NCBI GenBank assembly: GCA_002269645.1
Contig: NIVC01001231.1
Span: 79,440-143,439, forward strand
Source of the DNA: Macrostomum lignano
Lineage: Eukaryota
Direction: 5' to 3'
Length of the DNA: 64,000 bases
The notes below the pieces were generated by a model. That model saw only the letters and a list, made by a program, of their open reading frames with translations, had not been told where the DNA came from and did no database searches. The first letter of the stretch is position 1. Each line of letters opens with the position of its first letter. A program made the position numbers and the translations under genes. Positions 890-51,975 of the stretch are shown piece after piece.

Positions 890-907
890 AGACAGCAATT
901 AGCCGAC

Positions 908-6232: not shown

Positions 6233-6257
6233 TCAACTGGAGAAGAAGACGAAAGAC

Positions 6258-17244: not shown

Positions 17245-19431
17245 TCAATGGTTTCCTGGCTGAGACTTAAACTTATTGGGAGCCAGGAGGCTCTGTAAAT
17301 TTCGTTGCCGTGTAAATGCGGGCAGTATGCGGGAGCCTGGTTTATTTTGTAGCTTCTCAAAGTTTTTAGCTATCTCGTTGGCAAGCCAGACCGTAGATGG
17401 GTGAAAAGGAAGGACCAGTGGGATGGGTCGGAGATGATTGTCAACCCTGATGTTCGTACCTGGCGGTTTGCCAGTCCCCAGTTTTTTAATCCAGATTGGT
17501 TCCCTTAGTTCGATTTTGTAGTTATTAAGAACTTGTTCGATAGCAATGGAGACAAAGTTTGCAATCGAGTGATTGGGGGTGAGAAAGTGCTCTGACCCCG
17601 AAGTCACGACCCTCCTGTTAATATTTGACCTGTGTTGGTTCATTCTATCTCTCTTTGTTCTTCTAGTCATCCCTACATAGAAGATTTTCCCAGGGTGGCA
17701 CTGGTTGAAGGAGATGCCAAAGATGATGCTCTTGGAGCCACAGGACAGGCTCTGAGAGATTAAAAAACCAGAAGCCGGTTTCAGCCCCTGGGCGGAGAGA
17801 GCAGGCGGTGAGTGAGTGCAGCATTTGCAGCGGGATGACCCACAGGGATGGAACCCTTTGGGAAGCAGACCCAGATTGGTCGTTGGTCCCGCAGTCCAGT
17901 TCATAAGTTTGAGGACCTCCTTTTTGCAGTTTCTAATAAAAATCTTCAAGTAGCCTAATTGCTTGAGTTCCGATTTTAAAGAATTGAAAGCATCGTTGAA
18001 AGACTTGTAGTCATCACAGATACAGGCGTACCGAAGGACTTGGGATTTTACTACCCCCTTGAAGGTGTGTGACGGATGGAAGGACTGTCGGTGCAACAAT
18101 CTATGAGTGTCTGTTTCTTTTGAAAACAGTTGTGTAGTGAAGCGGTTTTCAGCTTTCTTGATGGTCCTGTCAAGGAAACTGACCTCAGTTGATGAGGAGC
18201 TGACGGTGAGTTTGATGTTGGGGTTGATTGAATTTAGGTGTCGAACAAATTCTGTCAGAGCTTCAGCCGGGTGGTTCCAGTGAATGAATATATTATCTAT
18301 GTACCTAAAGTAAATTTTCGGCTTATAAAGAGCTGTTCTCAGGGCAGTTTCCTCCCAGAGGCTCATGAACAGACAGGCATAGCTGGGCGCAAATTTGCGC
18401 CCCATGGCTGTACCTCTAAGTTGTAGGAAGATCATTTTGTCAAATTCAAAGTCATTCCTGTACAAACACAGTTCCAGTAGCTTTATTATTTTAGCATCCG
18501 GTCTAATGGGATCCGGGTATCGGTTAAAGAATTCCTGGATCGCTGCAATGCCCTGGTCTATGGGGATCATGGAGTATAGACTCTGGGCATCACAGGTTGC
18601 CAGAGTCGAACCTTCCGTGCAGCTTTTATCCATAAGGTGTGCCTTGAAGTCATACGAGTCCTTAACGAAAGTGGGTTGCGCTTGGGCAATCGGTTTAAGA
18701 AAGAAGTCTATGTACTTTTCTGCCCCAATTGCTTCAGAACTGCATCCGCTAACAATAGGTCTGCCTGCTGGGACCCGAAAGGGGATCAGCCAGGTGGCCG
18801 GGTCCTTGTGAATTTTGGGGAGCAGGTAGAAATGCCGGGGACGGAAGTTCTCTCCGGGACAAAGAAAAGAAAACTGTTTCTTAGATATGAACTTTCTGTT
18901 ACATAAATCGAGGAAGATCCTCCTGATAAGTTCCGCAGTCTCGGGTTGCAGTGGCTGGTCCAGCTGTTGATAGGCATTAGTGTCCAGCAATTGGTTGTAG
19001 GCTGCGAATTCGTAATCCTTGGGGTGCATGATGACCACTGCGTTACCTTTGTCCGCCTTTTTTATTAGGACGGAGCTGTTTCGCTTGAGCCCCTAAATCG
19101 CTCTGGTCTCTGGTACCTCTAGGTTGCCTTTGATCTGTACCGTTGTCAAATTATCTACCAGTTTTTTGTTCTCAAGCACAAACAAGTTGCACTCATCCCT
19201 TCTAAGTCTGCGGGGGACCTCCTTCCCTGATTTCCCGGTGAAAGGGGGCGGGCTGGTATTGGCGAGACCCCTCTTTTTGAAAAAGTCTTTCCAGAAAAGT
19301 TTACGATGAAATTCCGTCACGCAGTTCCTCAGATCCTCGAAATCAAGGGCTTGGGTTGGGATAAAATTGAGTCCCCTATCTAGCAGCCTCGTCTCAGATT
19401 CAGAGAGTTTGAAGGTGGGGTGTAGATTCAA
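17245..19431 (-). pseudogene. Penelope RT-GIY-YIG ORF with a premature stop and a catalytic D-to-N change
   Basis: The 112-aa and 597-aa ORFs are in the same frame and separated by one TAG. Confidence 0.88.
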
Positions 19432-20717: not shown

Positions 20718-23700
20718 ATGAAGTTTCTGTCGGGAATACTCGTCAATATTTTTGCGATTGCGATAGCGATGGTCGCTGTCGAGCCGCTTGAATTCGAGGA
20801 GGCGTCCAGCAGTGACGAAATGATCTGGAATCTGCTGCAGCTAGGCAGAAAATACAATAAAGCTGTTCGGCCGCCGCCAGATTACAACACAACCAATGTG
20901 GTCTACATCAACTTTATTGTTGTCAAGCTGCTAGGAATTGTGAGTTATAATGAACTATTAAATACCTTTGAATTTACACAAAGTGAAACAAGTCCTTTTC
21001 CTGATTTCTCGCTTGATTTTGCCTTACAAAAATTCTTTAGATGTAGTTTTATTACTTTGTCTATCAGAATTACATGCTCCACCCACTCGTCGCAACCGGG
21101 CCCTCACGCCTACGCACTAAATTTTGACGGCTTTGCGATTCTACGCAAAGATTAATGTAAAGATTAATGCTTAGATTAATGTAAGATCGTATTATAGGCA
21201 AAGATTTAGAGTGAAAGAGCTGTCTGTGTGCAGAGCGGCGTTGGTACCACTTGACCAAATTAGACTGACGAGACGTCTATGGGAGAACTTCCAAATTTTG
21301 GACTAAATAAAGTTCTTTCCATTCATACCCTTTTACGCACTGGTTGATTAATTACCAACGCTGACTCAGTTTTCATCATGGCTTTATAAAATAGGATTTC
21401 AATCGATTGATAACTGGTGGGCCATCTGCGATTTTTAACCATAGATTTTTTACCAAGGCGTTATAAAATTGGCCCCAGTGGACACGCAACGTTCAAAGTT
21501 ATATTTTTGCACAAAATATAGGACTGTTCATAAGACAACGATTCAGCTTTGGAGCCGTCACCAGACGTTTGTCTGATGTCCTAAAAAGTCTATGGTGAAT
21601 GGGCATTTCTCAACTTACGTCAACTAATGCCGACGTACCGAAAACTTAATATATAGATTTTGCAAATTCCAAAAAAATTGTTTTCTCGTCGTCTTTGGTG
21701 CTTTTTCATGACGTCTGCTGTACGTCGGCTTAACGTATAACTACTCATTTCTATAACGAGAGTCCGTTGCAGGACGTCAGAAACGTCTGGAGCTGACGTC
21801 GCTTTATAGACGAGCACGAGCTGAAAGATCGCTTTACAAAGCCGAATCTCTTATCAATATTTAGTTCAAAAATATAACTTTGAACGTGTGTATCCACAGG
21901 TGAGGTGGTCGTGGCTACGTGTCTACAGCAGATAAATATTTGTTTGTAGATTGCGTGGCTTCTGCTCCGTAGAGCATTCTGGCGTTCGTCCGATGTTTCA
22001 GATGTCTATTGTCTGTTGTATAACGTCGGATGCGTCGGTGGAATCCGGATAGAGGAAATATTTTATTGGCACCAATTTAGACCATAAATTATAAGAAGCC
22101 AACTGATAAAGTCAGTAAATGGCACTACAGATGCAAGGCAACCCATAGCAATTCTCTCAGAAACTTCGAGCTCGAAATTGCATGTAAAACAATTGGTATA
22201 CAATTTCGATACCACAATTATTTTAATTGCTTTTCCCCAATAGCTAAAATGGTTATACCGCTCTATTTCAGAACGAAGTTGCTCAGCACATGTCGCTGGA
22301 AGGCTTTACCGAAATGGTAAGTGGAACAATTTATTGCGCCCAGCTCGACTAATAGCCTGCACAAACACGCAGAGCTTCCACCATGCTTCAGATTTCAAAT
22401 TGCTCACATCCGTGCGCCGAACTTTAACCAGCGTCACCGAACTATGCTGCCTATTTGGGTGGATTAGGGATTGTCTGAAGCTCATGAAAGCTGCACCCCT
22501 TCGATAAACATTACCGCAGGAATGGAACGACTACCGTCTAGCCTGGTACGACAGATACAATGGAACGTTCAACCACATAACGGTCATCTATTTGCCGCGA
22601 TCTTCCATCTGGATACCCGATGTGATCACGATAAACACGTGAGATGGGCTCTAGAATCTACTTTAATAATAACAATTATAACACTTCTTTAGTTTCGTCG
22701 AGTGAGCAGTTAATTGAAGACATCGGAATTGACCGAGCAAGTATTTGTTTTGGTCCGAGGTTGACTCACAGGTGAAGGATAACTAATTTTTGAAAAATAT
22801 GTCCTCAAAAAGGAATTAGCAATCATTATCAGCCATTTGCGCATTAATTCCGTGAACCGGGTTTTCGTGAATTCGGTTTTGCCTTGCTTGACACTCAGAA
22901 GTCCTGTAGCCAGTAGGTGAGCTATCGGAATTTTAGCATTTGAAAGCAATCAGAGAACTGTGTATCCAACTTTACCTGTAATCCGATTTGCAGCGAAAAC
23001 AGGCATTTAATACGTGAAAATCGTGATTTACGAGTGTAGCTAGCATACTTTTACTTTGATTGCCCATTGCGCCATCGTATAATGCAATAATTACAGTTGA
23101 TGCTCAACCAATAACCAATAACTTCGATTCAAGAGTCGAGCACAAAGAGTCAACTCAGCCGTTGTCCGCCATTGTGCTGGCCGACGGTCGCGTTTTCACC
23201 AGTTCGCCGTTCAATACGCGAACCCTGTGCGACATCAACATGCTGTACTTCCCGTTCGACACCCAGGTCTGCAGAGTGGTGTTCGGCAGCTGGCTGATGG
23301 TCAGGGCGGACCTGGAGCTCCGGGTGCTCAACAAGAACGCATCATCGGTTCTGGCACCGGACACTCTTCGTCAGCAGAACATCGAGAGTGATGAATACTG
23401 CATAACAAAGAGCGACTTCTGGGTGACACCAGTAACCGATCTCGGCGCATGCCAGGAGGCAGTTTTCACAATCGTCATTCAGGTAGGGCATCAGTCAGCA
23501 CCAATTCTAATGATACTTATGAGCTCGGATTTGCTCAGATGAACATGGACTCGGAGCAGTTCCAACAGATATCGGCATGAATCTCATTTTAGCGAAAGCC
23601 GCTCTTCTACGTGATGAACCTCATCATGCCGAGCTTCCTGATCCTCATCATCTGCGCGTTCAGCTTCTTCCTGCCGCCAGACACTGGCGACCGGCTGTCG

Positions 23701-24564: not shown

Positions 24565-25407
24565 ATATTTGGGCTTTGAGGCTGCTCGTTTCTATGGAAG
24601 CACCTAACTTCTATTCGACAAAAGCACTTCCTTGTAACATCTTTAATCGAATTGAAATAACGTTTAAATAAAACTGACTCGCCTATAATTACTATATGAG
24701 ATAGAAACGGTTTATGCTTCATTTTCAATGCCTAAACTACAGGTCTGTGACCTAAACTCTAACCAAAGCCCCAAACCTAATGCCTTTAACGTATTTTTAG
24801 TCAAGCAAATTTCATTTCTTTTGAATTTCTTTGGAAACAAGGCTCGGTTAATCGGGGGTCTGGATGTCTTTCTTGCTCTGCATCCCAGCTTCTCTTCCCG
24901 TATCCTGTATCTCCCATGTCTTTCTATCTCTCAGGAACATAAGAATAAACTCTACACCAAATGATAAGATGTCACTTATTCCCATCTCAAAGCTAAACTC
25001 CCTGCTTTGCTCCTGTAGTTTTTTGTCGATTTGATGTCGCGAAAGAATCGTCTGGGAAACAACTTCACGAATCTGGTGAGCTGGTGCTGAGCTGGTGCTA
25101 AGCTGCACCCACGAATACCGCTGAAATGGGAAACAACGGAAGTGAAGCCGCTCTCCACGAAGAATAGCTTTTTTTAAAGACAATGCCGTCAATACAGAAA
25201 GTAGCAGAAAGCATCAAAACAGTGACTCCGGGTCACCCGCGTGGCATTCCCGGCTCAGCGTATCCTGACTGACATCCTGCCTGCGGAATTTTCTATTTTT
25301 TCGATTATCGATTTCTGCCGTATATATCAGGAAGAGTTTCAGTCTCTGGGAGTCGATGCGCGAGAGTCAATGTCATTGTGAAAGCAGAAAGTCTGTTCGG
25401 CCAAAAA

Positions 25408-26437
25408 ATGAAGCTCGATTTCGGCAAGATTTTCTACCTACTCTGTCAACTCGCTCTCGCATCTGCCGACAAGTCGCAGAACCTCACCGGCTGCGGCCCG
25501 GACCCGAGCTACAAGCTGGCCGTCAACACGACGTACTGCGTGGGGCCCGAGTCTACAACTGCGGTGTCCGCCTGCGCCGCCATGGCCGCCTGCGCCAAGC
25601 TGGGGGAGAGTCTGCTCGGTCCAGCCGCTTACAATTCGTTGCGGAACTCCAAGATGACCAAGGACGCCTGGCTGGGCATCACGGATGCCGCTGTGGAGCG
25701 CGGCTCGAGTCCATCCGGTTGGCAACTTGTACCGGGATTGGAGCAGCTGGAGAACTTGGAGCTCTGGTCGGTTGAACAGCCGAATGGCGAGGGCGAGGAT
25801 CTGGATTGCGTGATCCACGTCGCCAAGGAGAACGGCCTGCACAACTACGAATGCAACGGAACCAAGCACTACCGATGCCAGAGGCCTGCTGGAGTCGATG
25901 CGGCTACTTTGACACCAAAAAGGTGGGAGCTACTTACGAATGACTAATTTTGGAAGTCATAAAACATTCGCACCAACCCGCTATGCACTGCAAGGTAAAA
26001 TTAGGGAAGCAATCGTAGCAACAGGTAAACATAGACCATGGGCTAACGGTACAATGCATTTGGTAGAAATTTTGTAGTCCCAAAAGTCCTCGGAAAATAC
26101 ACAGTATGATTTGATGCAATCTATGCAAACTACCGAGACCATTGCAAACTGCCACTTATACTGCAACAGCTACCAGCGGTTTTTCGACGCCCCAGTGCTG
26201 ACTTTCGCCCAAGACGCTCCCGGTTGCAACATCAAATCTGCAACGGCAGCCACCGCCATGCTCTGCGGTCTGAGCTGCTCAGAGAAGTTCGGATGTGTCG
26301 GCTTCTACCACAACGCTATTAGACAAGAGTGCCGTCTCCTGCTGTTCTTCGACGCGGCTCTGAAGCTGGACTATGATTCGGAGGCTGAAGAAGTCGCCTG
26401 GACGAAGATGCTGGCTTTTCCTCGGCCAAGCAATTGA
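25408..26437 (+). CDS. Secreted C-type lectin + PAN/apple-like protein, paralog 1 (exons 25408-25922, 26170-26437)
   Basis: Signal peptide, WLGITD, WSVEQPNG..DC..HNYEC...YRC; phase-2 intron; C-terminal C..CGLSC...CVGF...CRL pattern. Confidence 0.85.
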
Positions 26438-27211: not shown

Positions 27212-28412
27212 TCACATATGGACGGCAATTTTCTTAATCCAAGCAGCCTGCTCAGCCGGCGAGCTGTAACTGAGGCTGACAGCCGCGTCCATGTACAGCA
27301 GCAGCACGCACTCCCTGCGGGTTGCGGCAGAGTGCAGGAATTATGCATGATGCATGTAAAAGCTTCTGAGATGAGATTCAGACCCCGGTGAGATGGAAAA
27401 CTAAGGTTGAAGGGCTCCATACTCGATTTTCCCAGAATCAGTCCCTAGGAACCACAGCCAATAGCGTTGTTTATCGTACCGGCGCAGCGGGTTGAAGTAG
27501 AAGCCAACGCAGCCGAGCTTCTCCCGGCACTCGCCAGCGCAAAGCAGCTCAATCGGCAGCTCCAGTGCGATCTTTTCTGTGCACCCGACGGCTCCCTGCG
27601 TGAAGTCGACGACTGGACTTTCTACGAACAGCTCGTAGTGAGCCGGCACGGGTCGCTCGTCTCCCATCGGGTGCTCGCACCTGCAGGCGATTGTAGCAGT
27701 GCATCCAGCGTCGTGCAGCTTCTTTGTGGTCGGGTTGTGATTTACGCAGTCCTCGATGGAGGTGCCGTCCGGCTGGCCAGTGTTCCAGAGATCCGTCAGG
27801 GTGAGCAGCGAGCCGGCACGGTTGGGTACGACCTGATAGAAGCATTGAGTAGGTTGCGAGTTCTGTTGGATATAGCGAGAAAATTAAACATCCTAAGTGA
27901 TTCTTGGGAACGGAAATATTAGCTTAGGCAAAACTCATATTGAATTCTCACACAGTTCCATAGGGTTAACAGGAGAAAACCAAGACGTAGAGAGGTGGCA
28001 AGTTTGATCATTACCCGCTTTCGAACCGCCCTTTTTTATTATCCGCTTTTGCCCTATGAACATCTTTTTATGATTAATTTATAGACGTACTTGTGAACTG
28101 CTGTGTAATCTTTAGCTATCCAAAAAGCCACACCTGCCATCCGGTGGGACTCGAGCCTCGCTCGACCAGCTGGTCGTTGATGCCGGTCCAAACTTCTCCG
28201 AGGCTGAGCCGAACTGCCGCGTACGTGTCGGGCTGCAGAATTCGCTGGCCCAGCTGGGCGCAGGTTTTCAGGCACTGGCAATAGTTGACGTCGGTAGCCA
28301 CTGAGCCGCTGAGGCAGGTGGTCAGGTTCGGAGCGGCCGTGTAGCCCGACGGGCAGGATGGCTGGACCGGCTGCAGCAGAGACAGAGAGCAAAGTGCCAG
28401 GAGCAGCAGCAT
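27212..28412 (-). CDS. Secreted C-type lectin + PAN/apple-like protein, paralog 2 (exons 28412-28134, 27832-27480, 27314-27212)
   Basis: Signal peptide, VWTGIND..VERGSSPTGWQ (shared with paralog 1), WNTGQPDG..EDC..LHDAGC, CAGECREKLGCVGFYFN, ECVLLLYMDAA; splice phases are consistent. Confidence 0.85.
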
Positions 28413-28576: not shown

Positions 28577-29217
28577 TTGACTTACTTGACTTAGCTGCAG
28601 GGCTGTCCCGAAGGGGACACAGCGGGAAGGCGCGGGCGCCCATTCCGCTAGTCCCTGAACGGCCGACGCGTCGCTATGGACGGAGGGTTGGCGCCGCCCA
28701 GGGAGGTCCCCCAGTGTCGCCAGCAGCTATGGTGCTCTCTGGAAAGGAGAGTTCAGCCCTGCGGGTGGCCCGAAGGTAGCGCATGAGCTGATTAAAGTTT
28801 TCGGGTTTGCACGCTTCAGTAATAGATGTGTGTGGCCCGAGGTAAGTGAGTCTGGCCCGCGTGAAGGCGGGACAGATGCTGACGAAATGCTCAGCGGTTT
28901 CGTCACCTGAGTTGCAGAAGCTACAGGTGGCGTTGGTGGCGTTGCCCTGCAGGTACTGGTGCCTGGAGAAGCAGCCGTGACCAGAGAGGGTCATGGTGGC
29001 AGCCCGGATGTCTCTGCGCGAGAGGCGCAAGAGGAGCTTCCGGAGCTGGTGAGAGGGCTGAGGGACAGCGTCTCTGGATTGCCTGCAGTTCGTGCGGTTC
29101 GCCCAAGTCGAGCGGTGCTGAGTCCTGATCCACGCTTTGATGCGCGAGTCGATGACACAGCCAGGAATCGGGACAAGAGGTTCGGGGCCGAGAGAGGAGC
29201 CGGAGGCACCAACTTCA
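28577..29217 (-). mobile_element. 5'-truncated non-LTR retrotransposon (R1/LOA/I-like C-terminal CCHC region)
   Basis: LSGHGCFSRH..CSFCNSGDETAEHFVSICPAF..R; 3' tail (TAAGTCAAG)x2; candidate 7-bp TSD GCTCCTC at 28570-28576 and 29218-29224. Confidence 0.8.
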
Positions 29218-31042: not shown

Positions 31043-32490
31043 GGCTTGGCTGGGAATTGCTTGCAGGTGCCTGCTCAGTCAGCCTCGGACACGCATTTTG
31101 CTTTTACATTCATTACTCAAAGCCAACCTGTGGTTCCCAGGCAACCAACTGGGTTGGTAAATTGGTAAATTGAAAACAAAAAGTTAGGAGAAATTCAAGT
31201 GTCGCTCATTCAGTCAACGATCCAAGGGCATAAGTTAGAGTGCAGAAGAGCTCCTAAGTGTATTGAAGATCTTCACTGTTCTTGGATTTTTCAGAAGCTC
31301 TTGTTAAATATTTCAGAACCACTTAAAGAAGAAAAGTAATGCAGGTAGGGCTGATGAGAATTTCTAATTCTACGAAGTATGCTTCAGATTCACCTTTGGA
31401 GCAATTTTCATTGAAATATTCTCTAAGAAATCCATTCTCACTCAGTTTTGTTGTCCATTGATTGCATTCAAACGCGGTGTTGGGTTGCAGACACAAACGC
31501 TTCTATTTCTGAATGCAAGTTTAGCATTATCGGCATGAGATGTGAGGACACGACGATATCTCAGCTGCGAGAGGTGGTGTGGAGCTCAAAAACATCTGTC
31601 CTACTCAACGGTGCCAAGGCCGGCTCAATGGTTGCACATGTATTCCATGCTCCATGAGTGGTGCAATGGGAACTCAGCCAGTGAACTAACTAGTCCAGGC
31701 CGCGTGATTCTGATATGGCTGTTAATTTATAAAAGTGACCTGATGCGGTTGGAAGGCATTCGAGTCTTCGCGGATTTGACGCACGTCTTTTGCAATTTGG
31801 TTAGTACTGCATGACGACTGTTAAAAACTTGGTTGGCCAAAATTCAAGCAATGCATCATATCAAACCCTTCTTACTATCCATAAGTAGTAATATACGCTT
31901 GATAAAAATGTAACAGCTTTGACTGCATTTCAACGCATCATTCTTAGCAAATAAACTCCGGCACTCTTGATCCTGCGGTTGCTACTCAAGGATTAATCTC
32001 GCAGTTGAATTCTTGATCCATGCGTCTCAAGGGTCACAGCAGTCCCCAAGCCAATTTTGCTGGTGTTTTCATTCATTTGTTGTCCCTTCTGGCTTTCTGA
32101 TGCCCAGGGGCATTGAGGGGGCAGAGAAATTCGAATAGGACCAAAGTTTCTGGTGCTCCATTTGAAATTTTCTAACCTTGTAAGAATAAATTTTCCAATG
32201 CGTATGACTTGCGGTCGGATTAATTAAACCCGTGGCATGTATCGGACTTGCGCCGTATTTCTGCGGAAATATACTTTACAAAACGTGAGTAAACTGAGAC
32301 GGAGAAGCACTAGGTTTCTCAATGGCGTAGTCTTCCTTCACTCGAGACATTGGGATATGTATATTTCGGGCGCGTCATTTCGAATCTTCTTGACTTTAAT
32401 GTTCTTTCTTTGGGTCTAGTAGTGTTCAGAGTTATCATTTGAGTGCGCTGTTTCTCATGAACATTTTGGGTTATTTAGAAATGCTCATTT

Positions 32491-32871
32491 CTAAAACAGC
32501 AGCGGGTCGTATCGCTTCCGGAAAAGAAGCGGGTCGTATCGCTTCCGGAAAAGCAACGGGTCGTATCGCTTCATAGACAGCAGTGGGTCGAACCTCTTCA
32601 TGGACAGCAGTGGGTCGAACCTCTTCATGGACAGCAGTGGGTCGAACCTCTTCATGGAAAGCAGTGGGTCGAACCTCTTCATGGACAGCAGTGGGTCGAA
32701 CCTCTTCATGGACAGCAGTGGGTCGAACCTCTTCATGGACAGCAGTGGGTCGAACCTCTTCATAGACAGCAGTGGGTCGAACCTCTTCGTGGATAGCAGT
32801 GGGTCAAACTTCTTTGTCTTTGATAAACTGGACTTATCGGAGTGGTGTCGAGCACCATATTCTTTCGGAGC
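32491..32871 (-). CDS. Probable last exon of a neuropeptide prohormone (12 KR/KK-flanked FDPLLS(T/M) and YDPLLF peptides)
   Basis: The 27-bp repeat reads KK-FDPLLST, 8x KR-FDPLLSM, 2x KR-YDPLLFR, KR-YDPLLF-stop. Many unit differences are synonymous. Strong acceptor TTTTTTTCTTGCACACCGCAG at 32873/32872. Signal-peptide exon not resolved. Confidence 0.75.
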   Translation of the reverse strand, partial: APKEYGARHHSDKSSLSKTKKFDPLLSTKRFDPLLSMKRFDPLLSMKRFDPLLSMKRFDPLLSMKRFDPLLSMKRFDPLLSMKRFDPLLSMKRFDPLLSMKRYDPLLFRKRYDPLLFRKRYDPLLF

Positions 32872-35800
32872 CTGCGGTGTGCAAGAAAAAAAACAGTCCA
32901 TTAATATTTATTATGAGAAGTAGTAAATAAAAGCTACTGAGGGAAGAGCACATCGGTGCTCAGACCCGATCTCATGCGAAATCCGAGTCCAATCAATCCG
33001 CCGAGAAGCAGATCGATGGTCAAACTGAATGGAGCTGCAACAGCGGCAGCTGAGCCGTGACTACTGATAAGCCGATGGAAGGAAATTTAAACCCTACCGT
33101 CGCTCCCCAACGCCCAACGGACCACGCAGTGGGAGCTAGCTGGGGAGCGCTCTTCAGAATATCGACCCTTCGGGGGATCCCATCGACCCTCGAGATGAGT
33201 CCCCAAGACGCTCCACTATAATCACTACCAACCGAAGCAATTAATTTTTTCGCTCTGACGGTTCAGGGTCGCAGAGTAAAATTGAGCAATGAAAATTGAA
33301 GCGCCGTACCGCGAAGGCTTCACTGGCAGCCAGGCTGCCGATCAGAAGGCACCAAAGTAGCGATCTGCCCATGGCGAGCTCGGCGTCAGGAGTACCCAGC
33401 TAGTCGGTGCGAGACGCAGCGCTTCTAATTAGGCTCTGAAAAAAATGATGCAGCGAGGTTGGCTGTGTTGGAATATTTCTCTGGAACACTGCAGCTGCCG
33501 ACTAAGAAGGCTTAAAAGGAAAGGATGGGTTTGAGAGAGACGCCAGGAGCAGACGATCCATCAACCTCTGAAAGAACCTTGCTGAGCCAGCCGCAGCTGC
33601 TAGAGATTAGAAAAACAGTTTCCATTCGTTCCATAATCTTTATTTTCCTTGTGCACACGCTGTGCTCACGTGCGCCATCTGATTGAGCCATGAGCTTGAG
33701 CTTTAATTAATTTGGACGAAAAAAGCAGAACAAAGATTTACAAATCAAACATGATATGGCAATATTGATCTTGTATGAGCAAATCTTCAACCCTGCGATT
33801 GCATGAAGACTGAGAAGGGCCTTTGATGCTGCAGTGATGAGTATAAATTCTGAGCCAGGCTAAATTAATTTACTCACCAAAGGGCTTGGCAGCAGGGACC
33901 TTCAAGCTACGAGCAAAAGCTTTTCGGGGATGAGTCGTGAGTATAGGGGACCAAAGCACCGCAAGCCTTCCCTGCCGTCAAAGACGAAGCTTAAATGATG
34001 GGTCTTCGCCGCCAGTGAGAGGCGTCCCCGCCCCGGAAAGGGTGAAAGAGAGCCTCGTGTCTCTGAATAGTGGGAGCGCAGAGCCAATCGGGGGGATCGT
34101 GAATGGAAGACGGTCGACAAACGGACGAAGCCTCTGCCGTGTTTGAGTTGGCGAGACTCAGCCAACAATCTTGACCCGTCTGCTCCCATTAGGGAGAATC
34201 CAGAAAGTGGAAGTTGGCAGGGAAGAAAGCAATGCGAAAGAGGAACCAGAGAGTCGAACGTCGATTCGGCATTCGAAAAGTAAAGCAGCAGGGAGAGCAG
34301 GCTGCTGCCTCCGCCACTCCACGAGTTCTTTTCAAGCCCTCCGTCAAGCCTCTTGTGACTTTCTAATAGCGGAACAAGCATTAGCTGTCAGGGGAAAGCC
34401 AACTGGGAAGCAAATTGTTGACTTGCCGCTCCGAAAGAAAAAGATCGGTCGAATTTTTTTGTTTTGGTTCGATTCCCCTGAGTCGCTTTGAGCCAACTGG
34501 CAACAGCCAAGGCTGATCGCAGTTGCCCTTAATTCTCTCCGATGAGTTCCAACATGAGTTGGAAGCCTTCTGCAGTCATCGAGGCACTGAAAGTGTGTCA
34601 TTGTTAGGAGCTAGTTTCAGCGTTGCAACCATATAATGCTTGGAAAAATATAGCAAACAATGTCTAGCTACCAGCCAATTTAACTCCATTGATGGACAGA
34701 ATCAATGCTGGCAACAATAGCACAGTCATCCTTGAAAACTAACTGAAATTGCCTGTGCCCATTGTGATAAGAGCTTTTTGACTGTTTTTCATGCTGCTAT
34801 GAGAGTAGTGCCTCAAAAAGTCTTCCAAATAATAGACAGAAAAATGGACAAAACCTATGGACTAGCTTTCCCAAATATAGCTCGCTTTTAGAAGCAAGCA
34901 TTTTAACAAACAATGAGACCAATGACAGTCTTAGTGAAGCACAGCAAGCATTTTTCAGTAGAATGGTTATTTGTTTTGCAAAATTAGAAACTCTAAGCAA
35001 TGCATTTTGAAGTGTTTGTGAAGTGAATTTTTAGATGTTTCATGCTCACTAGATACTGTACCGCATCGACTCGGGATTAACGCTGGATAAGTCTCTTTCC
35101 AAAATCCGAAGGTTTTCCCCTAGCTACCTACATATACCTGTGAGGCCGCACTCAAATGTGAGTTCGTATATGTAGGACTTCATTAACTCTGGCATCTGCC
35201 AACTCCAGCCTTAATGCTCAGTTCAGTCATCATACATCACGGGCCTCTCGGCGTGTCCGCCCTTGTAAATTATTCATGTTGATGCAGTGAATGAAGCCAG
35301 ATACTTTGCTGCTCGAAGTTAATAAGCAGGGATTTTTCCTCTGTGGATGCTTGCTTGGGGGTAAAGCACGAGGGGTTAACTGCATCAACATAAGACTTTT
35401 AAAAGTAGCATTGAACGTTCTTTGCAGATGGATATTTTCAGGTGGTGCTAAAATCAAAAAGTTTTGCAACGGGCCTTACATAAAGCGACGTGCTGCGGTA
35501 TTCCTGTACATGGATCTAAGTGAGTTTGCTTAAGACCGATGATTGTTGTACTTCTAAAAATTTGTTCTGAAACAGTTTAAACGCTATAGTTGAGAGAAAG
35601 CGCACGATTTCAACCGCTCGAGTTGAGTATATTGGTGTCAAAGATCAATTTGTTGCTTATTGCTATTTACAGCAATATCAAGCCTGGAACTTGTCCAGAC
35701 GACTTTCAGTTGCTATTGCATGATTGCGGGGTCGCGTGCGTTTGGTTTGAATCGCGTCGCAATAAAGCACAGTTTGTTTAATTGTAAAATCCTCGCGATA

Positions 35801-38400: not shown

Positions 38401-41400
38401 GGGATGTCAACTTAAGCACCAGAATGGAGCCCGAAGTTCAGCTCCGGACCAAACCGACTACAATCGATAACTTGTCGGCCCAGACGACTAGAATCGCCGA
38501 GACATCCCATCCGGCTCCCTTCCTTGGGGTCCCAGGGGATAAAGGGGATAAAATGGGGATCTCATGTCAACTTAAGGCTCTGGAATGGAGCCCGAAGTTC
38601 AGCTCCGGACCAAACCGACTGCAATCGATAACTTGTCGGCCCAGACGACTAGAATCGCCGAGACATCCCATCCGGCTCCCTTCCTTGGGGTCCCAGGGGA
38701 TAAAGGGGATAAAATGCAGATCTCATGTCAACTTAAGGCTCTGGAATGGAGCCCGAAGTTCAGCTCCGGACCAAACCGACTGCAATCGATAACTTGTCGG
38801 CCCAGACGACTAGAATCGCCGAGACATCCCATCCGGCTCCCTTCCTTGGGGTCCCAGGGGATAAAGGGGATAAAATGGGGATCTCATGTCAACTTAAGGC
38901 TCTGGAATGGAGCCCGAAGTTCAGCTCCGGACCAAACCGACTGCAATCGATAACTTGTCGGCCCAGACGACTAGAATCGCCGAGACATCCCATCCGGCTC
39001 CCTTCCTTGGGGTCCCAGGGGATAAAGGGGATAAAATGGGGATCTCATGTCAACTTAAGGCTCTGGAATGGAGCCCGAAGTTCAGCTCCGGACCAAACCG
39101 ACTGCAATCGATAACTTGTCGGCCCAGACGACTAGAATCGCCGAGACATCCCATCCGGCTCCCTTCCTTGGGGTCCCAGGGGATAAAGGGGATAAAATGG
39201 GGATCTCATGTCAACTTAAGGCTCTGGAATGGAGCCCGAAGTTCAGCTCCGGACCAAACCGACTGCAATCGATAACTTGTCGGCCCAGACGACTAGAATC
39301 ACCGAGACATCCCATCCGGGTCCGTCTCTTGCCGAAACTTCCAACACCCCCGGCGGCTCGGATGTGTAACTCAAAGTCTCTCCAGGAGTCACCTTCGTAG
39401 CTACCGAGAACCTCCTTGACACGAATGTTTTGAATGTAATAATCGGCTTGATTTAGTTGATACGGACCCACCGAAACCTCTGACAAATTCACTGTATGAA
39501 TTCGGGGGAACCCCGAGCTTTTTGGATCCAGCGGGTTGACAGCAATCCATGCCCTTGTGTTAGCAGGGGGGCACGCTTCAGATCACAGTTGAAGTGCAGC
39601 TGCTCAATTTCGTCCAGTTCGTTGGACAAGAGCACTCGGCGCATGAAATTCTGCCCGAATTCGAACAACGATAGCCCTGTCCATGACGGTGGCAGCTGTT
39701 TAAATGATTCAAAACCTGGATGCGCCCGGTTGTACTTTGCCATCGAGGTCTCGATAACAACGTCTAATCGGCTGGGCTCACTGAAGCCGGCTGACGGCAG
39801 CCACTGATACGGTTTGTGCCTCTCGATAACACATTTGTCCTGCTTAATGGCAGCAAAGCAGCACTCAACGACAGAGCGGAACATAGTGGCACAGCGGATG
39901 TCTCGGCGATTCTAGTCGTCTGGGCCGACAAGTTATCGATTGCAGTCGGTTTGGTCCGGAGCTGAACTTCGGGCTCCATTCCAGAGCCTTAAGTTGACAT
40001 GAGATCCCCATTTTATCCCCTTTATCCCCTGGGACCCCAAGGAAGGGAGCCGGATGGGATGTCTCGGCGATTCTAGTCGTCTGGGCCGACAAGTTATCGA
40101 TTGCAGTCGGTTTGGTCCGGAGCTGAACTTCGGGCTCCATTCCAGAGCCTTAAGTTGACATGAGATCCCCATTTTATCCCCTTTATCCCCTGGGACCCCA
40201 AGGAAGGGAGCCGGATGGGATGTCTCGGCGATTCTAGTCGTCTGGGCCGACAAGTTATCGATTGCAGTCGGTTTGGTCCGGAGCTGAACTTCGGGCTCCA
40301 TTCCAGAGCCTTAAGTTGACATGAGATCCCCATTTTATCCCCTTTATCCCCTGGGACCCCAAGGAAGGGAGCCGGATGGGATGTCTCGGCGATTCTAGTC
40401 GTCTGGGCCGACAAGTTATCGATTGCAGTCGGTTTGGTCCGGAGCTGAACTTCGGGCTCCATTCCAGAGCCTTAAGTTGACATGAGATCCCCATTTTATC
40501 CCCTTTATCCCCTGGGACCCCAAGGAAGGGAGCCGGATGGGATGTCTCGGCGATTCTAGTCGTCTGGGCCGACAAGTTATCGATTGCAGTCGGTTTGGTC
40601 CGGAGCTGAACTTCGGGCTCCATTCCAGAGCCTTAAGTTGACATGAGATCTGCATTTTATCCCCTTTATCCCCTGGGACCCCAAGGAAGGGAGCCGGATG
40701 GGATGTCTCGGCGATTTTAGTCGTCTGGGCCGACAAGTTATCGATTGCAGTCGGTTTGGTCCGGAGCTGAACTTCGGGCTCCATTCCAGAGCCTTAAGTT
40801 GACATGAGATCCCCATTTTATCCCCTTTATCCCCTGGGACCCCAAGGAAGGGAGCCGGATGGGATGTCTCGGCGATTCTAGTCGTCTGGGCCGACAAGTT
40901 ATCGATTGCAGTCGGTTTGGTCCGGAGCTGAACTTCGGGCTCCATTCCAGAGCCTTAAGTTGACATGAGATCCCCATTTTATCCCCTTTATCCCCTGGGA
41001 CCCCAAGGAAGGGAGCCGGATGGGATGTCTCGGCGATTCTAGTCGTCTGGGCCGACAAGTTATCGATTGCAGTCGGTTTGGTCCGGAGCTGAACTTCGGG
41101 CTCCATTCCAGAGCCTTAAGTTGACATGAGATCCCCATTTTATCCCCTTTATCCCCTGGGACCCCAAGGAAGGGAGCCGGATGGGATGTCTCGGCGATTC
41201 TAGTCGTCTGGGCCGACAAGTTATCGATTGCAGTCGGTTTGGTCCGGAGCTGAACTTCGGGCTCCATTCCAGAGCCTTAAGTTGACATGAGATCCCCATT
41301 TTATCCCCTTTATCCCCTGGGACCCCAAGGAAGGGAGCCGGATGGGATGTCTCGGCGATTCTAGTCGTCTGGGCCGACAAGTTATCGATTGCAGTCGGTT

Positions 41401-42095
41401 TGGTCCGGAGCTGAACTTCGGGCTCCATTCCAGAGCCTTAAGTTGACATGAGATCTGCATTTTATCCCCTTTATCCCCTGGGACCCCAAGGAAGGGAGCC
41501 GGATGGGATGTCTCGGCGATTTTAGTCGTCTGGGCCGACAAGTTATCGATTGCAGTCGGTTTGGTCCGGAGCTGAACTTCGGGCTCCATTCCAGAGCCTT
41601 AAGTTGACATGAGATCCCCATTTTATCCCCTTTATCCCCTGGGACCCCAAGGAAGGGAGCCGGATGGGATGTCTCGGCGATTCTAGTCGTCTGGGCCGAC
41701 AAGTTATCGATTGCAGTCGGTTTGGTCCGGAGCTGAACTTCGGGCTCCATTCCAGAGCCTTAAGTTGACATGAGATCCCCATTTTATCCCCTTTATCCCC
41801 TGGGACCCCAAGGAAGGGAGCCGGATGGGATGTCTCGGCGATTCTAGTCGTCTGGGCCGACAAGTTATCGATTGCAGTCGGTTTGGTCCGGAGCTGAACT
41901 TCGGGCTCCATTCCAGAGCCTTAAGTTGACATGAGATCCCCATTTTATCCCCTTTATCCCCTGGGACCCCAAGGAAGGGAGCCGGATGGGATGTCTCGGC
42001 GATTCTAGTCGTCTGGGCCGACAAGTTATCGATTGCAGTCGGTTTGGTCCGGAGCTGAACTTCGGGCTCCATTCTGGTGCTTAAGTTGACATCCC
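38401..42095. mobile_element. Foldback-type element: inverted arms of 161-bp tandem repeats around a transposase fragment
   Basis: Both outer ends read GGGATGTCAACTTAAGCACCAGAATGGAGCCC. Left arm 38401-39319 (about 5.7 units), right arm 39896-42095 (about 13.7 units, inverted), 576-bp spacer. No TSD seen. Confidence 0.9.
39320..39895 (-). pseudogene. Internal fragment of a PIF/Harbinger-ISL2EU-like (DDE_Tnp_4) transposase
   Basis: RCATMFRSVVECCFAAIKQDK resembles the third-acidic-residue motif (R..T..RW.VE....LK.W). After a frameshift, FPRIHTVNLSEVSVGPYQLNQADYY matches the FP.L....L..I.LG.YQLKQA.SY motif. Recognised by eye. Confidence 0.62.
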
Positions 42096-46830: not shown

Positions 46831-47712
46831 CTTCTATAAGTTCTATATGTCCTATGTGCCATAGCAATTCAGAAATTGGCCATGAATTTATTATGGTTGA
46901 CTCTATTATTCTTTTATGTTTGAACCTTAAGCCTTAACCTTACCTTTCTCTGTGTCAAGTCATAGCAGTTCAGCAATTATCCTTGAGCCTAAGAATTTCA
47001 AGTAATTCCCCTATGAGCCAGTGCCATAGCAACTCAGAAATTCACCTACAAGAGTCTTGACATCTTGATAATTCCATTAGTCTTTATAGTTAAACCCAAA
47101 CTCTAACCTTGCTAAGTCAAGCATTTTAGAAATTCTTCCTATGAACCTTGGAATCTTTATCATTACCTAATGAAACTTAACATTTCATGAATTCTATCTA
47201 AGCCCAAGAGTTATAGGAATTCTTTTATAAGCTTTTTTAGCAAAAACCAAATGATATGTATTTTAAAGTTGATATGACAATTCTTGTATGTTTGTTATAA
47301 CATTTGTTTATTATTTTTATTTTATTTATTATTTTATTTTTAAATAATGCTTCTTTAATCCATAATGCTTTTATGGCTGACGTGCCCTAGGCCAGTTTTC
47401 AGTGAAACAATAACATGAATTGTAGCCCTTATAATTTAACACTCACATTTTTAAAGGTGAGCTTAGACTTATTAATTTCTCTTGGTTAAGTGAATTTGCA
47501 TCACTTCTATTAGTATCTGGGCTTAAGCTAAAATATTTTTTGTAAATAATAATAAGCACAAAAGAGACTATTCAAATCTAGATTTATAAACAATAATCAA
47601 CCATCTTCAATTTCATATATTGCTGTGGAGTATTTAGCTAAAGCATATTCAGGCAACAATCCTATGACAGCTGGTGTACGCATGCAAACAGCAAGCCACC
47701 TCACTGACCAGA

Positions 47713-49674
47713 ATGCTTCACTGTCTGCTGCTGCGATGCATTCGCCCAAATCCAGCCGCAGCTCTGCCTCGGCTATTGAATCGCTTTGCTGGCAACTCAG
47801 CAACAGCAGCCTCTGGCGGGGCCTCCCCTGCCAGCCCGGCCCCACTGCAGCCAGCGGCCGTGCAGTTCTACAGGCGAGCCCTGCCAGCCAACTGCGTGGC
47901 ATTCGGCAGCCCCGAGGGCAAGCAAGTATTCGCGAGGCCCTTGAGGCCGGCTTCATGGAAGGCTATTTTTCCCTGGCTTCGCAGTATCGAACTCAGGACG
48001 ATCCGTCATTCTGCGGCCTGGCAACGCTGGTGATGTGCCTCAATAGCCTGGAGGTGGATCCTGGAAAAGTTTGGAAAGGTCCCTGGCGATGGTTTCACGA
48101 AGAGATGCTGGACTGCTGCGTGCAGGTGAGGCAGGACAAACAGTCGGGAAGGAACCCAGATCCACGGTTTTCCCTGGGGAGGGTCAGCTGACCCCCTTGT
48201 CCCCCACAGGATATAGCAGGGTCTTCTAATCCCCGTGACCCCTTGTCCCTCCCACAGGATATAGCAGGGTCTTCTAATCCCCGTGACCCCTTGTCCCTCC
48301 CACAGGATATAGCAGGCTCTTCTAATCCCCCTGACCTCTTTGTCCCCCCACAGGATATAGCAGGGTCAACTAATCCCCGTGACCTCCTTGTCCCCCCACA
48401 GGATATAGCAGGGTCAACTAATCCCCATGATCCCCTTGTCCCCCCACAGGATTTGGCAGGGCAACTTATCCCTGTGACCTCCTTGTCCCCCCCACGGGAC
48501 TTGCTATTGTGCTTGTAATTTTGCGTTGTTCAGTAATTAAAAAAAATGCATATACTAATGACCCTACTGTTAGTAGAAATGTAAAAATAGTATTAATTTT
48601 TTTGTTCAGCTACTTAGAGTAGAAATATAAGTAAAATATGCGAAAATACTTGACTTGCGCCCACAGGTGGACCGGGTCCGCAAGCACGGCCTGACCCTGG
48701 CTGAATTTGCCTGCCTGGCTGGCTGCAATTCGCTCCAGGTGCGCCGCCTGGTGCATCCCGCCTTCGACGCCGATCCTCAAGCCGACGCCGCCGGCCTCGC
48801 CGAATTCGAAGCGGCCGTTCGCGACTGCAGCCGCACGGACGGCTGCATCCTGGTGGCCAGCTACAGCCGGCGAGCGCTCGGCCAGACCGGGGACGGCCAC
48901 TTCGCCCCGATCGGTGGCTTCCACCCGGACAGGCAGCTCGTGCTCATATTCGACACGGCCCGGTTCAAGTATCCGTCGCATTGGGTGCCGCTGCGCCAGC
49001 TCTGGGATGCGTTGAAGCTGCCAGACTCAGCCACTGGACGGCCGCGCGGCTACTGCGTGCTGGCCAAGGCCCCGGGCCTCACCGCCTTCCGCGTCTCGCA
49101 GCGATTCGCCACTGGCGTCCGGCAGCCGGACTCGCCGCTGCTGCGGCTGGCGCGCGACTTTGAGGACTGGCTGGCCGCGGAGGTTGAGGTGGGTGCGCCA
49201 GCCAATCAGATCAGAGAGATGAGTGACGCTATCGCGGCCCTGTCGCAGGCGGCCGGGCAGCTGGGCCGGCTGTGCGGCCGCCACCGGTTGGCCGAGGCCG
49301 TTCTCAGTCGGCAGCGTCAGGCCGCGGCGGACGCGGATGCCGAGGCTGTGCTGGCGGCGCTGCGCTCGCTGCCGGCGCTCGGCCCGGTCGGCGACGCCTT
49401 CCTCGCCGGCCTGAGGCAAAGCGCAGCCGCCGCAGGCGTGGCCGCGGATGTCCAGCTTGAAGTCGACAACGGCTGCGGCGGTGCGGACGGCTCGCTGGCC
49501 CTCCTGACGCTGCTGGCTTGGCCGATGCCGCCGGGTTCGGCCCGTGCCGCTCTGCTAGCAGAGGCGCGCGATTGGGTGCTGCGCTGCGCGCCGAACCGCC
49601 TAGCAACGGAGGTGCAGCTGTTGCGCAATCAGCTATCGACAATATTCGAGATAGCGCCCGTGCGAGTCTCGTGA
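47713..49674 (+). CDS. PCS: Phytochelatin synthase (exons 47713-48125, 48667-49674; one-base frameshift at about 47931)
   Basis: [18 protein letters not shown] / [45 protein letters not shown]; [10 protein letters not shown]; FDTARFKYP; Cys-His-Asp triad intact. Confidence 0.93.
48187..48497. repeat. 48-bp minisatellite in the PCS intron
   Basis: Unit CCCACAGGATATAGCAGGGTCTTCTAATCCCCGTGACCCCTTGTCCCT, about 6.5 copies. Confidence 0.93.
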
Positions 49675-49701
49675 ATTTGTAATTTGCGCATTTTGTTTAC
49701 A

Positions 49702-50173
49702 AAAACGGCCCTTTCGGGGCATTGATTTACCCGTTGAAAACGTTATCGCGAGAAGAACGGCTAAGGAGTCATTTCAAACAGCTCACTGGCGACTCTTGTG
49801 ACTTTTTAACGACCCAAACGACTGTAATGCGACGGAGAGGTGACTGTTAAGTCGCAAAAATATTGTTTGCAAGTCGCTTAACTTTTTACTTAAATGCAAC
49901 ATGCGATTCTAGATAATTATAAATTATAATAAATTGACGCAGATCCGCTTTAGCCGCAACTCAGTGGTTCTACAGCGACTCCAACATGCCTCAGAAACGA
50001 CTCTACGGCTTCAGAGTCGCAGACAATAAAACGCCTCAAATTGACTCTTAGGCGACTCTTTGACGACAATTTGGCAACTTTTACCGTGATATCTGTTCGT
50101 TTTAGAGTCGTCTGGAATCAAAAACCGGAGCTGTGCTTTTGTTTGAAGTGAAGTGCCTTAAAAGGGCCGTTTT
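49702..50173. mobile_element. MITE-like element
   Basis: Inverted ends AAAACGGCCCTTT / AAAGGGCCGTTTT; interior with repeated GCGACTCT motifs. Confidence 0.55.
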
Positions 50174-50409
50174 AAATTTCTACGGAATTGCTAATCATGA
50201 TGCAACAACCAACTGTAGCTAACCTAATTATAATATTCTGCATTTTAAAAAAACCCAATTCACTTTTTTGATGGAATTATGCAATTTTTTAATATTACAA
50301 TCTAAGTATTTGTTTTTCATTGCTTTCATCAAGCAAAATTGCAAGTTTTGCATCTGATTTCTATACTTTTTTTAATGAGAATTACTCGCCATGTGTTCTG
50401 CTCTGACGT

Positions 50410-51230
50410 GAATAAATAGAATGGATTGCTAATCTAGCCAATCAGAGGTGAATGAATAGAATGGATTGCTAATCTAGCCAATCAGAGGTGAATGAATAGA
50501 ATGGATTGCTAATCTAGCCAATCAGGTGAATTAATAGAATGGATTGCTAATCTAGCCAATCAGAGGTGAATGAATAGAATGGATTGCTAATCTAGCCAAT
50601 CAGAGGTGAATGAGTAGAATGGATTGCTAATCTAGCCAATCAGGTGAATTAATAGAATGGATTGCTAATCTAGCCAATCAGAGGTGAATGAGTAGAATGG
50701 ATTGCTAATCTAGCCAATCAGAGGTGAATGAATAGAATGGATTGCTAATCTAGCCAATCAGGTGAATTAATAGAATGGATTGCTAATCTAGCCAATCAGA
50801 GGTGAATGAGTAGAATGGATTGCTAATCTAGCCAATCAGAAGTGAATGAATAGAATGGATTGCTAATCTAGCCAATCAGGTGAATTAATAGAATGGATTG
50901 CTAATCTAGCCAATCAGAGGTGAATGAATAGAATGGATTGCTAATCTAGCCAATCAGAGGTGAATGAGTAGAATGGATTGCTAATCTAGCCAATCAGGTG
51001 AATTAATAGAATGGATTGCTAATCTAGCCAATCAGAGGTGAATGAGTAGAATGGATTGCTAATCTAGCCAATCAGAAGTGAATTAATAGAATGGATTGCT
51101 AATCTAGCCAATCAGAGGTGAATGAATAGAATGGATTGCTAATCTAGCCAATCAGGTGAATTAATAGAATGGATTGCTAATCTAGCCAATCAGAGGTGAA
51201 TGAATAGAATGGATTGCTAATCTAGCCAAC
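50410..51230. repeat. 40/38-bp minisatellite carrying a CCAAT box
   Basis: GAATGGATTGCTAATCTAGCCAATCAGAGGTGAATGAATA alternating with a 38-bp variant. Confidence 0.95.
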
Positions 51231-51639
51231 AGAGTTATTTTCGTTACTGCGTGTGTACTCTTGTCATGTCTAATACAATTAATCACAATATATTAAGTAC
51301 TTAATATTCTTAGGCCGCTTCTATTTTTCTAGGATGACAAGTAACAATTGCAGTTGACTGGATTGCCTGCAGTTTGATGATAAGCTGGTGATATAAGCTT
51401 TTGTTTTATTGTAATTATATGTACTTTTACTGTTTATTAACGCTTGTAAAAAAACCTAGTTTTTCCTTACGCAGCCAAGTACTGTAAACAATACAAATAT
51501 AATGTACTTATACAAGTGAGATTTTTGATGCGCTTTTTGAAGAAAGGTCTCTGTAAATGCTTTTAAAATTCCGGGTATCATCTGTGCTCACGGCTAATAC
51601 TTAAAATTATTAAAACCTTGCATTGTTTGGCTGCCAACT

Positions 51640-51975
51640 TCCCAGATTCTCAGTTGCTGGGCCAGCCTCCCAGATCCTCAGTCGCTGGGCCAGCCTCTTA
51701 GATCCTCAGTTGCTTGGCCAGCCTCTCAGATCCCCAGTTGCTGGGCCAGTCTCCCAGATCCTCAGTTGCTGGGCCAGCCTCCCAGATCCTCAGTTGCTGG
51801 GCCAGCCTCTCAGATCCTCAGTTGCTGGGCCAGCCTCCCAGATCCTTAGTTGCTGGGCCAGCCTCCCAGATCCTTAGTTGCTGGGCCAGCCTCCCAGATC
51901 CTCAGTTGCTGGGCCAGCCTCCCAGATCCTCAGTTGCTGGGCCAGCCTCTCAGATCCTCAGTTGCTGGGCCAGCC
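51640..51975. repeat. 28-bp minisatellite
   Basis: CTCAGTTGCTGGGCCAGCCTCCCAGATC. Confidence 0.93.

Follow-up and report, generated by a model that had tools for sequence, protein, structure and literature searches.

The array of 27-bp units on the minus strand of a Macrostomum lignano contig raises the question of whether a neuropeptide prohormone gene is located here or just another minisatellite in which one frame is open by chance. An earlier note, made from the sequence alone, had suggested the former. The DNA analyzed, referred to as the window, covers the final 64 kb of contig NIVC01001231.1 (assembly GCA_002269645.1); all positions given are those of the window, and the position in the sequence record is obtained by adding 79,439. 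With M. lignano, a free-living flatworm, the host of the sequence belongs to the Platyhelminthes, as do the hosts of the npp-26/spp-15 peptide family considered below.

Evaluation of any open reading frame (ORF) in this window needs to consider its repeat content. Tandem Repeats Finder returned 47 rows for the 64 kb, and minisatellites of 20 to 48 bp were very dense at positions 1 to 7158, 48189 to 53268, and 61126 to 63795. In many of these arrays, several frames have no stop for 120 or more codons, leading to long spurious ORFs. With dozens of minisatellites open in several frames, the openness of a frame is by itself no evidence here, so that other features of the array had to be used.

The repeat exon and its peptides

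The minus strand contained a single open frame of 126 codons plus TAG from 32871 to 32491. Its product was APKEYGARHHSDKSSLSKT-KK-FDPLLST-KR-(FDPLLSM-KR)x8-YDPLLF-RKR-YDPLLF-RKR-YDPLLF-TAG. It comprises 12 peptides, one FDPLLST, eight FDPLLSM, and three YDPLLF, with KK, KR, or RKR as dibasic flanks, and the last YDPLLF runs straight into the stop codon TAG (32493 to 32491). Direct translation reproduced the coordinates and the number of dibasic-flanked peptides up to a stop that the earlier note had reported. Tandem Repeats Finder divided the repeat into two adjoining 27-bp arrays with 0 indels, at 32558 to 32814 (9.5 copies, 94% matches) and at 32501 to 32572 (2.7 copies, 95%). Combined with the codon reading, these are nine 27-nt units on the minus strand at 32572 to 32814, KK-FDPLLST followed by eight times KR-FDPLLSM, and three 27-nt units at 32491 to 32571 on the same strand, KR-YDPLLF-R, again KR-YDPLLF-R, and KR-YDPLLF plus TAG. 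According to the translation, the exon starts with a spacer propeptide of 19 residues (APKEYGARHHSDKSSLSKT, 32815 to 32871, minus strand), which could be aligned with the spacer of P0001, a paralogue described below (YGSKAAGGHDVDKKSK versus YGAR--HHSDKSSLSK).

An acceptor-like sequence, T8CTTGCACACCGCAG|G, was placed exactly at 32872/32871 and is the strong acceptor that had been noticed before ahead of the repeat. Since the pyrimidine tract and the CAG end exactly at 32872, the repeat exon, predicted exon 2, should start in phase 0 at 32871. The ATG at 32901, which opens the contiguous ORF (MDCFFSC...), was rejected as start codon: it is not followed by a signal peptide and is located within the predicted intron.

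Coding signal in the repeat array

A scan for the motif [FY]DP[LIM]x(1-4)[KR][KR] in six frames of the whole 64 kb resulted in 11 matches, all of them in one frame and all at this locus. All the synonymous codon variants claimed earlier were present in the array, in which the codons found were Ser as TCC/TCT, Leu as CTG/CTT/CTA/TTG, Arg as AGG/CGA, Phe as TTC/TTT, and Pro as CCA/CCG. When the variant codons of each block were scored against the consensus of that block, 8 synonymous and 3 non-synonymous within-block variants were counted in the coding frame, compared to 1 to 3 synonymous and 8 to 10 non-synonymous ones when the same nucleotide differences were read in each of the other five frames. 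Of the non-synonymous variants, one has K in place of R within a dibasic site, one has T in place of M in the first edge copy, and one is the terminal stop. If single bases of the consensus unit were changed at random, about 25% of the changes would be synonymous, and on this basis the binomial probability of the synonymous excess was P ~5e-4. The nine-unit block contributed 4 synonymous and 2 non-synonymous variants, both of the latter in the first (edge) unit, with K-for-R retaining the dibasic site, and in the YDPLLF block all four variants within the peptides were synonymous (TTG/CTT/CTG, CTT/CTG, TTC/TTT).

Other arrays of the window with a period divisible by 3 served as controls, and the longer ones of these (periods of 21, 24, 30, and 33 bp) were without codon-position bias; the shorter ones had too few variable sites to judge. 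The two peptide blocks differ from each other at 9 nucleotide positions, with the [FY]DPLL core and the dibasic sites kept in both, which indicates that the array has spent time under constraint. The repeat array is under purifying selection in the coding frame.

Predicted structure of the gene

The 15 kb upstream of 32871 were scanned for hydrophobic segments that begin with ATG and run up to a GT. A phase-0 join to the acceptor and a resemblance to a signal peptide were combined in only one candidate, MGRSLLWCLLIGSLAASEAFA at 33372 to 33310 on the minus strand. According to the hydrophobicity and phase scan and to direct reading, these 21 residues are the predicted coding part of exon 1. The predicted start codon (33372 to 33370) has the context gccATGG, and an in-frame TAG is located 30 nt upstream of the ATG. 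The layout of MGRSLLWCLLIGSLAASEAFA comprises a basic n-region, MGR, a 13-residue hydrophobic core, and A-F-A in front of the junction; in silico, the predicted precursor begins with a signal peptide like the members of the npp-26/spp-15 family. The donor of predicted exon 1, GCG|GTACGG in phase 0, is only a moderate match to GTRAGT. Sequence reading places a predicted phase-0 intron of 438 nt directly after the signal peptide (32872 to 33309, minus strand, GTACGG...T8CTTGCACACCGCAG); if the frame of exon 1 is continued into this intron, it ends at a stop 22 codons further on. In the paralogue BOX15_Mlig023240g1, a phase-0 intron of 320 nt occupies the equivalent position, right after the signal peptide. 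The spliced predicted precursor has 147 residues.

The earlier note named the lack of an upstream signal peptide among the findings that would speak against the gene, and with 33372 to 33310 a candidate is present. The middle exon that had been postulated can be dropped because the phase-0 exon would join exon 2 directly. Smith-Waterman alignment of the predicted signal peptide with that of Schistosoma npp-26 (MGRSLLWCLLIGSLAAS versus IGR-LFYCLL-GSLAIS) gave a score of 40 with a shuffle p = 0.0005, which becomes a modest p ~0.016 after correction for ~32 comparisons. Seven other signal-peptide candidates in the same comparison, among them the exon at 34729 to 34672 proposed earlier (p = 0.23), gave p >= 0.13. 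This similarity is independent of how exon 1 was picked and, as a sequence comparison, is supportive of exon 1 but not decisive.

Further motifs were found around the predicted gene. As judged by the motif alone, a candidate polyadenylation signal ATTAAA is located 91 nt past the stop codon (32395 to 32400, minus strand) and a candidate AAATAA 15 nt past it (from 32476, minus strand). A strong acceptor-like site, CATCATTTTTTTCAG|AGCC at 33436 to 33460 on the minus strand, is positioned ~63 nt ahead of the predicted start codon; a spliced leader could be trans-spliced there, and the site would then mark the 5' end of the mRNA.

Relatives in M. lignano

The proteins retrieved by a word-indexed search were three in number and came without exception from M. 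lignano. Of these, P0001 (UniProt A0A1I8FZM5, "secreted protein"; E 2e-27) contains seven FDPLYGM and one FDPLSGM, P0002 (A0A1I8HH48) copies of FDPLIM, and P0003 (BOX15_Mlig023240g1, "hypothetical") copies of FDPLMM. P0003 begins with a signal peptide, and so does P0001 when counted from an internal Met (MVHPTK...). The labels in the annotation of these paralogues were "secreted protein," "hypothetical," or a spurious "PSCyt2 domain." They share with the window gene the FDPL core, the C-terminal Met, and the KK/KR/RKR flanks, and their repeat DNA is 77 to 82% identical. They differ in unit lengths of 8 or 9 residues and in having no YDPLLF-type copies, so that among the M. lignano members found only the window gene has Met-ended and aromatic-ended peptides on one precursor.

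The FDPLMM gene (contig NIVC01002440.1, positions 10001 to 10872 of the locus retrieved) consists of two exons, and its phase-0 intron follows the signal peptide, as in the gene model for the window. Its exon 1 of 81 nt encodes a 27-residue signal-peptide region and ends at the donor GAG|GTGCGT, and exon 2 contributes a spacer and FDPLMM in 16 copies; together, the two genomic exons encode 183 residues. The annotated BOX15_Mlig023240g1 has 95 residues with 5 of the 16 FDPLMM copies, and the genomic look-up returned the flag that the locus does not translate to the protein queried. The 5 annotated versus 16 genomic copies indicate that the repeat was collapsed in the annotation.

The 147-residue precursor had no matching protein in a collection that holds other NCBI proteins of M. 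lignano, and the exact look-up of the unspliced ORF in it returned nothing. This absence fits the earlier prediction that a repeat masker would hide the gene; the locus could have been repeat-masked, or it could be not expressed. The peptides FDPLLSM, YDPLLF, FDPLMM, FDPLIM, and FDPLYGM were not found printed in the literature searched; the M. lignano paralogues might already be listed in the catalogues of McVeigh et al. 2009 or Koziol et al. 2016.

Probable membership in the npp-26/spp-15 family

A phmmer search against 1.84 billion representatives gave 216 matches, nearly all of them unrelated repeats with a period of 9. A motif filter on these matches left the three M. lignano proteins, two isoforms from Schistosoma turkestanicum, and one metagenomic precursor as the only true relatives. 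The S. turkestanicum proteins P0108 and P0161 (CAH8441873.1 and CAH8441857.1) are of the npp-26 type and contain TTFDPILF, three NFDPILF, SYFDPIIY, SYFDPILF, and GYFDPIIY, in agreement with the published npp-26 peptides. In BLASTP, the spliced precursor was co-linear with P0108 from the signal peptide to the C terminus. This similarity to an accepted npp-26 member (phmmer E 1.1e-6, BLASTP E 5e-15) is expressed in scores of repeat-versus-repeat matches, in which the E values of both programs are inflated. The metagenomic precursor P0031 (contig of 904 bp from an environmental JGI metagenome; E 6e-16) is also of the npp-26 type, with a signal peptide, nine YFDPIMY, and one YFDPILY, and was presumably contributed by a flatworm. 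When metagenome DNA was scanned for three FDP codon triplets spaced by 27 nt, the pattern matched at least 120 loci, with no real family member among the matches listed. Pfam had no family for the window precursor or for Schistosoma npp-26 and returned only a sub-threshold match to ProSAAS.

The published peptides can be compared with those encoded in the window. In Schmidtea mediterranea, spp-15 is the source of FDPIMFamide and FDPIQFamide, both confirmed by mass spectrometry, and Collins et al. paired Sma/Sja-npp-26 with this planarian gene (PMC2953531, Table 3). Sm/Sj npp-26 gives rise to NFDPILF and SYFDPILF-OH (PMC2953531, PMC9495596); LC-MS/MS of cercariae revealed, among others, NFDPILF-OH and SYFDPILF-OH, the Schistosoma peptides being non-amidated (PMC9495596). 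In the miracidium, npp-26 is the marker of a small neuron cluster (PMC11349301), and NFDPILF activates SmGPCR9, the knock-down of which affects motility and gonads (PMC13367911).

The assignment of the window peptides to the FDPI(L/M/Q)F-type family of flatworms, suggested in the earlier note, agrees with the phmmer relatives and with these published peptides. Three copies, KR-YDPLLF followed by RKR or the stop, fit the family core [FY]-D-P-[IL]-x-[FY] exactly. YDPLLF has only two conservative differences (F/Y and I/L) to the FDPILF core of NFDPILF. Schistosoma npp-26 (Sm-npp-26, Smp_071050) and the window gene share a signal peptide, tandem 9-residue units of [FY]DP[IL]x[FY] between KR sites, and the non-amidated state, with the last peptide ending at the stop codon in both and precursor sizes of 142 to 155 residues versus 147. 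The hexapeptide core F-D-P-[IL]-x-F is shared with spp-15 of S. mediterranea (PMC2953531). The peptides of spp-15, compared as published, are amidated with a Gly in front of the cleavage site, whereas no Gly precedes any dibasic site in the window gene. No amidation is therefore expected, as had been proposed and as in the Schistosoma peptides detected by mass spectrometry.

The Schistosoma peptides possess one or two extra N-terminal residues (N, SY, TT, or GY) and always end with F or Y. In contrast, 9 of the 12 copies in the window gene are FDPLLS(M/T), with 7 residues, Met or Thr at the end, and Leu instead of Ile at position 4; these nine share [FY]DP[IL]x, and the aromatic residue is replaced by the S-M or S-T end. 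Expression, detection by mass spectrometry, and the receptor SmGPCR9 are established on the Schistosoma side of this comparison only (PMC9495596, PMC11349301, PMC13367911).

The Met-ended peptides and the pedal peptide/orcokinin type

Another family with a [FY]DPL core is the echinoderm pedal peptide/orcokinin type, represented by ArPPLN1b FGGKGAFDPLSAGFTD and SMP FGKGGAYDPLSAGFTD of starfish (PMC5656890). These peptides resemble those of the window gene in the core and in being multi-copy, non-amidated, and located between dibasic sites (PMC5656890), and the FDPLSGM copy of P0001 adds a further likeness. They differ in having 13 to 18 residues and a conserved C-terminal GF(xD), whereas the window peptides have 6 to 7 residues and no GF (PMC5656890). 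The N-terminal [FY]D-x-[IL] of the type is accordingly found here without its length or its C-terminal G-F. In planarians, ppp-1 and ppp-2 are pedal-peptide-like genes of their own (PMC2953531). The window gene was not connected with this family by any sequence search run here, and the likeness consists of a four-residue motif. Due to the differences in length and GF and to the separate planarian genes, the window gene was not assigned to this family, and the link is kept as a speculative one.

Nevertheless, the core shared with the echinoderm FDPLSAGFTD would allow the "flatworm-specific" family to be a truncated branch of the pedal peptide/orcokinin type, and the main products ending with Met, instead of the aromatic end in planarians and schistosomes, could represent a distinct ligand class. 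It is conceivable, if rather doubtful, that M. lignano expanded npp-26/spp-15 to at least four genes with mostly Met-ended peptides (FDPLLSM, FDPLYGM, FDPLMM, FDPLIM), which would form such a class with its own receptor and maybe a truncated branch of the bilaterian pedal peptide/orcokinin family.

Interpretation of the locus and alternatives

The locus is very probably an intact, unannotated two-exon gene of M. lignano for a 147-residue secreted prohormone of the npp-26/spp-15 family. To the observed sequence, homology, coding constraint, and gene structure of the paralogue, we add splicing, secretion, processing, neuronal expression, and a receptor as inferred steps. Exon 1 (33372 to 33310) would provide the start codon and the 21-residue signal peptide, and exon 2 (32871 to 32491), following the 438-nt phase-0 intron, would provide the spacer and the twelve peptide copies. 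The signal peptide would direct the precursor into the secretory pathway and would be removed in the endoplasmic reticulum. A prohormone convertase of the PC2 type would then cut after KK, KR, and RKR; a pc2 homologue of M. lignano is expressed in the nervous system, and its knock-down is lethal (PMC4490696). Trimming of the basic residues by a carboxypeptidase would yield the expected products, eight FDPLLSM, one FDPLLST, three YDPLLF, and one spacer peptide, the C termini of the peptides being free. Judging from npp-26 in Schistosoma and spp-15 in planarians, these would most likely be released by a small set of neurons to act on a peptide GPCR. Against this explanation stand the moderate donor GTACGG, the 9 of 12 peptides that do not have the C-terminal aromatic residue of the family, the absence of the product from the protein collection, the modest likeness of the signal peptides after correction, and the inflated E values.

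The gene may be real and its product secreted but not a neuropeptide; it could instead be a gland, epidermal, or reproductive product, for instance a defensive, adhesive-gland, or seminal-fluid one, with npp-26 as ancestry only. Several planarian prohormones are indeed expressed outside the nervous system (PMC2953531), the planarian relatives are called "secreted peptide prohormone" because no function was known (PMC2953531), and the C terminus of the FDPLx(x)M peptides departs from the canonical form. This alternative is nevertheless unlikely, since regular dibasic sites and products of 6 to 7 residues are a hallmark of convertase-processed signaling peptides, and since a cluster of neurons is marked by npp-26, the peptide of which activates a GPCR (PMC11349301, PMC13367911). 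There is also a low probability that the locus is a silent or recently dead duplicate, untranscribed and intact merely due to its youth. The genome of M. lignano abounds in duplicates, the paralogues number at least three, the locus lies in minisatellite-rich DNA, and neither a protein in the collection nor an annotated gene corresponds to it. The ORF, the start codon, both splice sites, and the stop codon are all intact, however; the synonymous bias of the repeat variants appears in the coding frame only, and blocks that have diverged at 9 nucleotide positions still possess the [FY]DPLL core and the dibasic sites.

The two other explanations have even less in their favor. In the gene model of the earlier note, MTVLLLPALILSINGVKLA at 34729 to 34672, in phase 1, is the signal peptide and an unseen middle exon follows; variants of this model use a phase-0 donor at 34685 or the weak acceptor aaag|AA at 32861. 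The hydrophobicity score of the segment is high (3.10), the phase-0 donor GGA|GTTAAA exists at 34685, and joining phase 1 to AAAG|AA at 32861 keeps the frame. Each version has its price, however: an invented exon to reach the phase-0 acceptor, the poor donor GTTAAA, or an acceptor that has no adjacent pyrimidine tract and bypasses the strong acceptor 10 nt upstream. Moreover, MTVLLLPALILSINGVKLA has neither a basic n-region nor a small-x-small cleavage motif, it has no likeness to any signal peptide of the family (p = 0.2 to 0.9), and its intron would be 1.8 kb compared to 320 nt in the paralogue. The exon at 34729 to 34672 was rejected for its wrong phase, the missing cleavage motif, and the missing likeness, making this model very improbable. 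A non-coding minisatellite open in one frame by chance would be in keeping with the >25 minisatellite arrays of the window, many of which have several frames uninterrupted for 120 or more codons. In this case, neither a frame bias nor protein homologues would be expected. Both were found: the bias is frame-specific and synonymous, with the longer control arrays (21, 24, 30, and 33 bp) having no position bias, and secreted multi-copy precursors of M. lignano itself and of Schistosoma are homologous to the product. An acceptor exactly at the 5' end, a stop codon immediately past the last unit, and a matching signal-peptide exon add to this, and the results already contradict a chance opening, which has next to no probability left.

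Other features of the window

Two large arrays of a 161-bp satellite are located at 38404 to 39323 (5.7 copies) and 39896 to 42092 (13.7 copies), with 98 to 99% matches, in opposite orientation and with ~570 bp between them. The same satellite is present on the homeologous contig NIVC01001227.1; the homeologous locus compared begins within this satellite and ends ~7 kb short of the peptide gene. A phytochelatin synthase gene, BOX15_Mlig000949g5 (501 residues), occupies 47628 to 49671 on the plus strand in two coding blocks, with a 48-bp minisatellite (48189 to 48492) in the gap separating them. Its exon at 48655 to 49674 was 100% identical to M. lignano BOX15_Mlig000949g5, and a homeologue with 99% identity exists on another contig. 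Around this gene, 22,047 bases of NIVC01001231.1 agreed at 100% identity with positions 37628 to 59674.

In Pfam, the ORF at 23060 to 23542 (plus strand) matched neurotransmitter-gated (Cys-loop) ion channels in their ligand-binding domain (E 1.1e-14). It probably represents one exon of a receptor gene at a distance of ~9 kb from the peptide gene. ORFs with C-type-lectin-like motifs were seen at 25378 to 25947 (plus strand, WLGITD...) and 28116 to 28412 (minus strand, WTGIND...). The former had a sub-threshold match to Pfam Lectin_C and no match in the search of the protein collection, and the two may be additional unannotated genes or decayed copies. Exact look-ups in the protein collection of two ORFs near the peptide gene returned nothing. 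The remaining features were an N-terminal exon of a DNA ligase at 5630 to 6232 (minus strand), a weak Tc1/mariner-like DDE_3 transposase ORF at 10365 to 11459 (plus strand), an ORF of 597 residues with no Pfam match at 17245 to 19038 (minus strand), and a weak remnant of a reverse-transcriptase zinc finger at 28674 to 29030 (minus strand).

Meaning for the peptides of M. lignano

The gene appears to be unannotated, and the family itself was already known, which makes this addition a useful but not a surprising one. Prohormone genes built from repeats are dropped or collapsed in the current annotation, with the window gene missing and BOX15_Mlig023240g1 represented by 5 of 16 copies. This indicates that the neuropeptide catalogue of M. 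lignano is probably incomplete for such genes. M. lignano is a transgenic and RNAi-tractable, free-living model flatworm. In schistosomes, a GPCR, motility, and the maintenance of the gonads were recently linked with the npp-26 family, and the member described here and its three mis- or under-annotated paralogues would offer a harmless laboratory system in which the peptides and their receptor can be studied.
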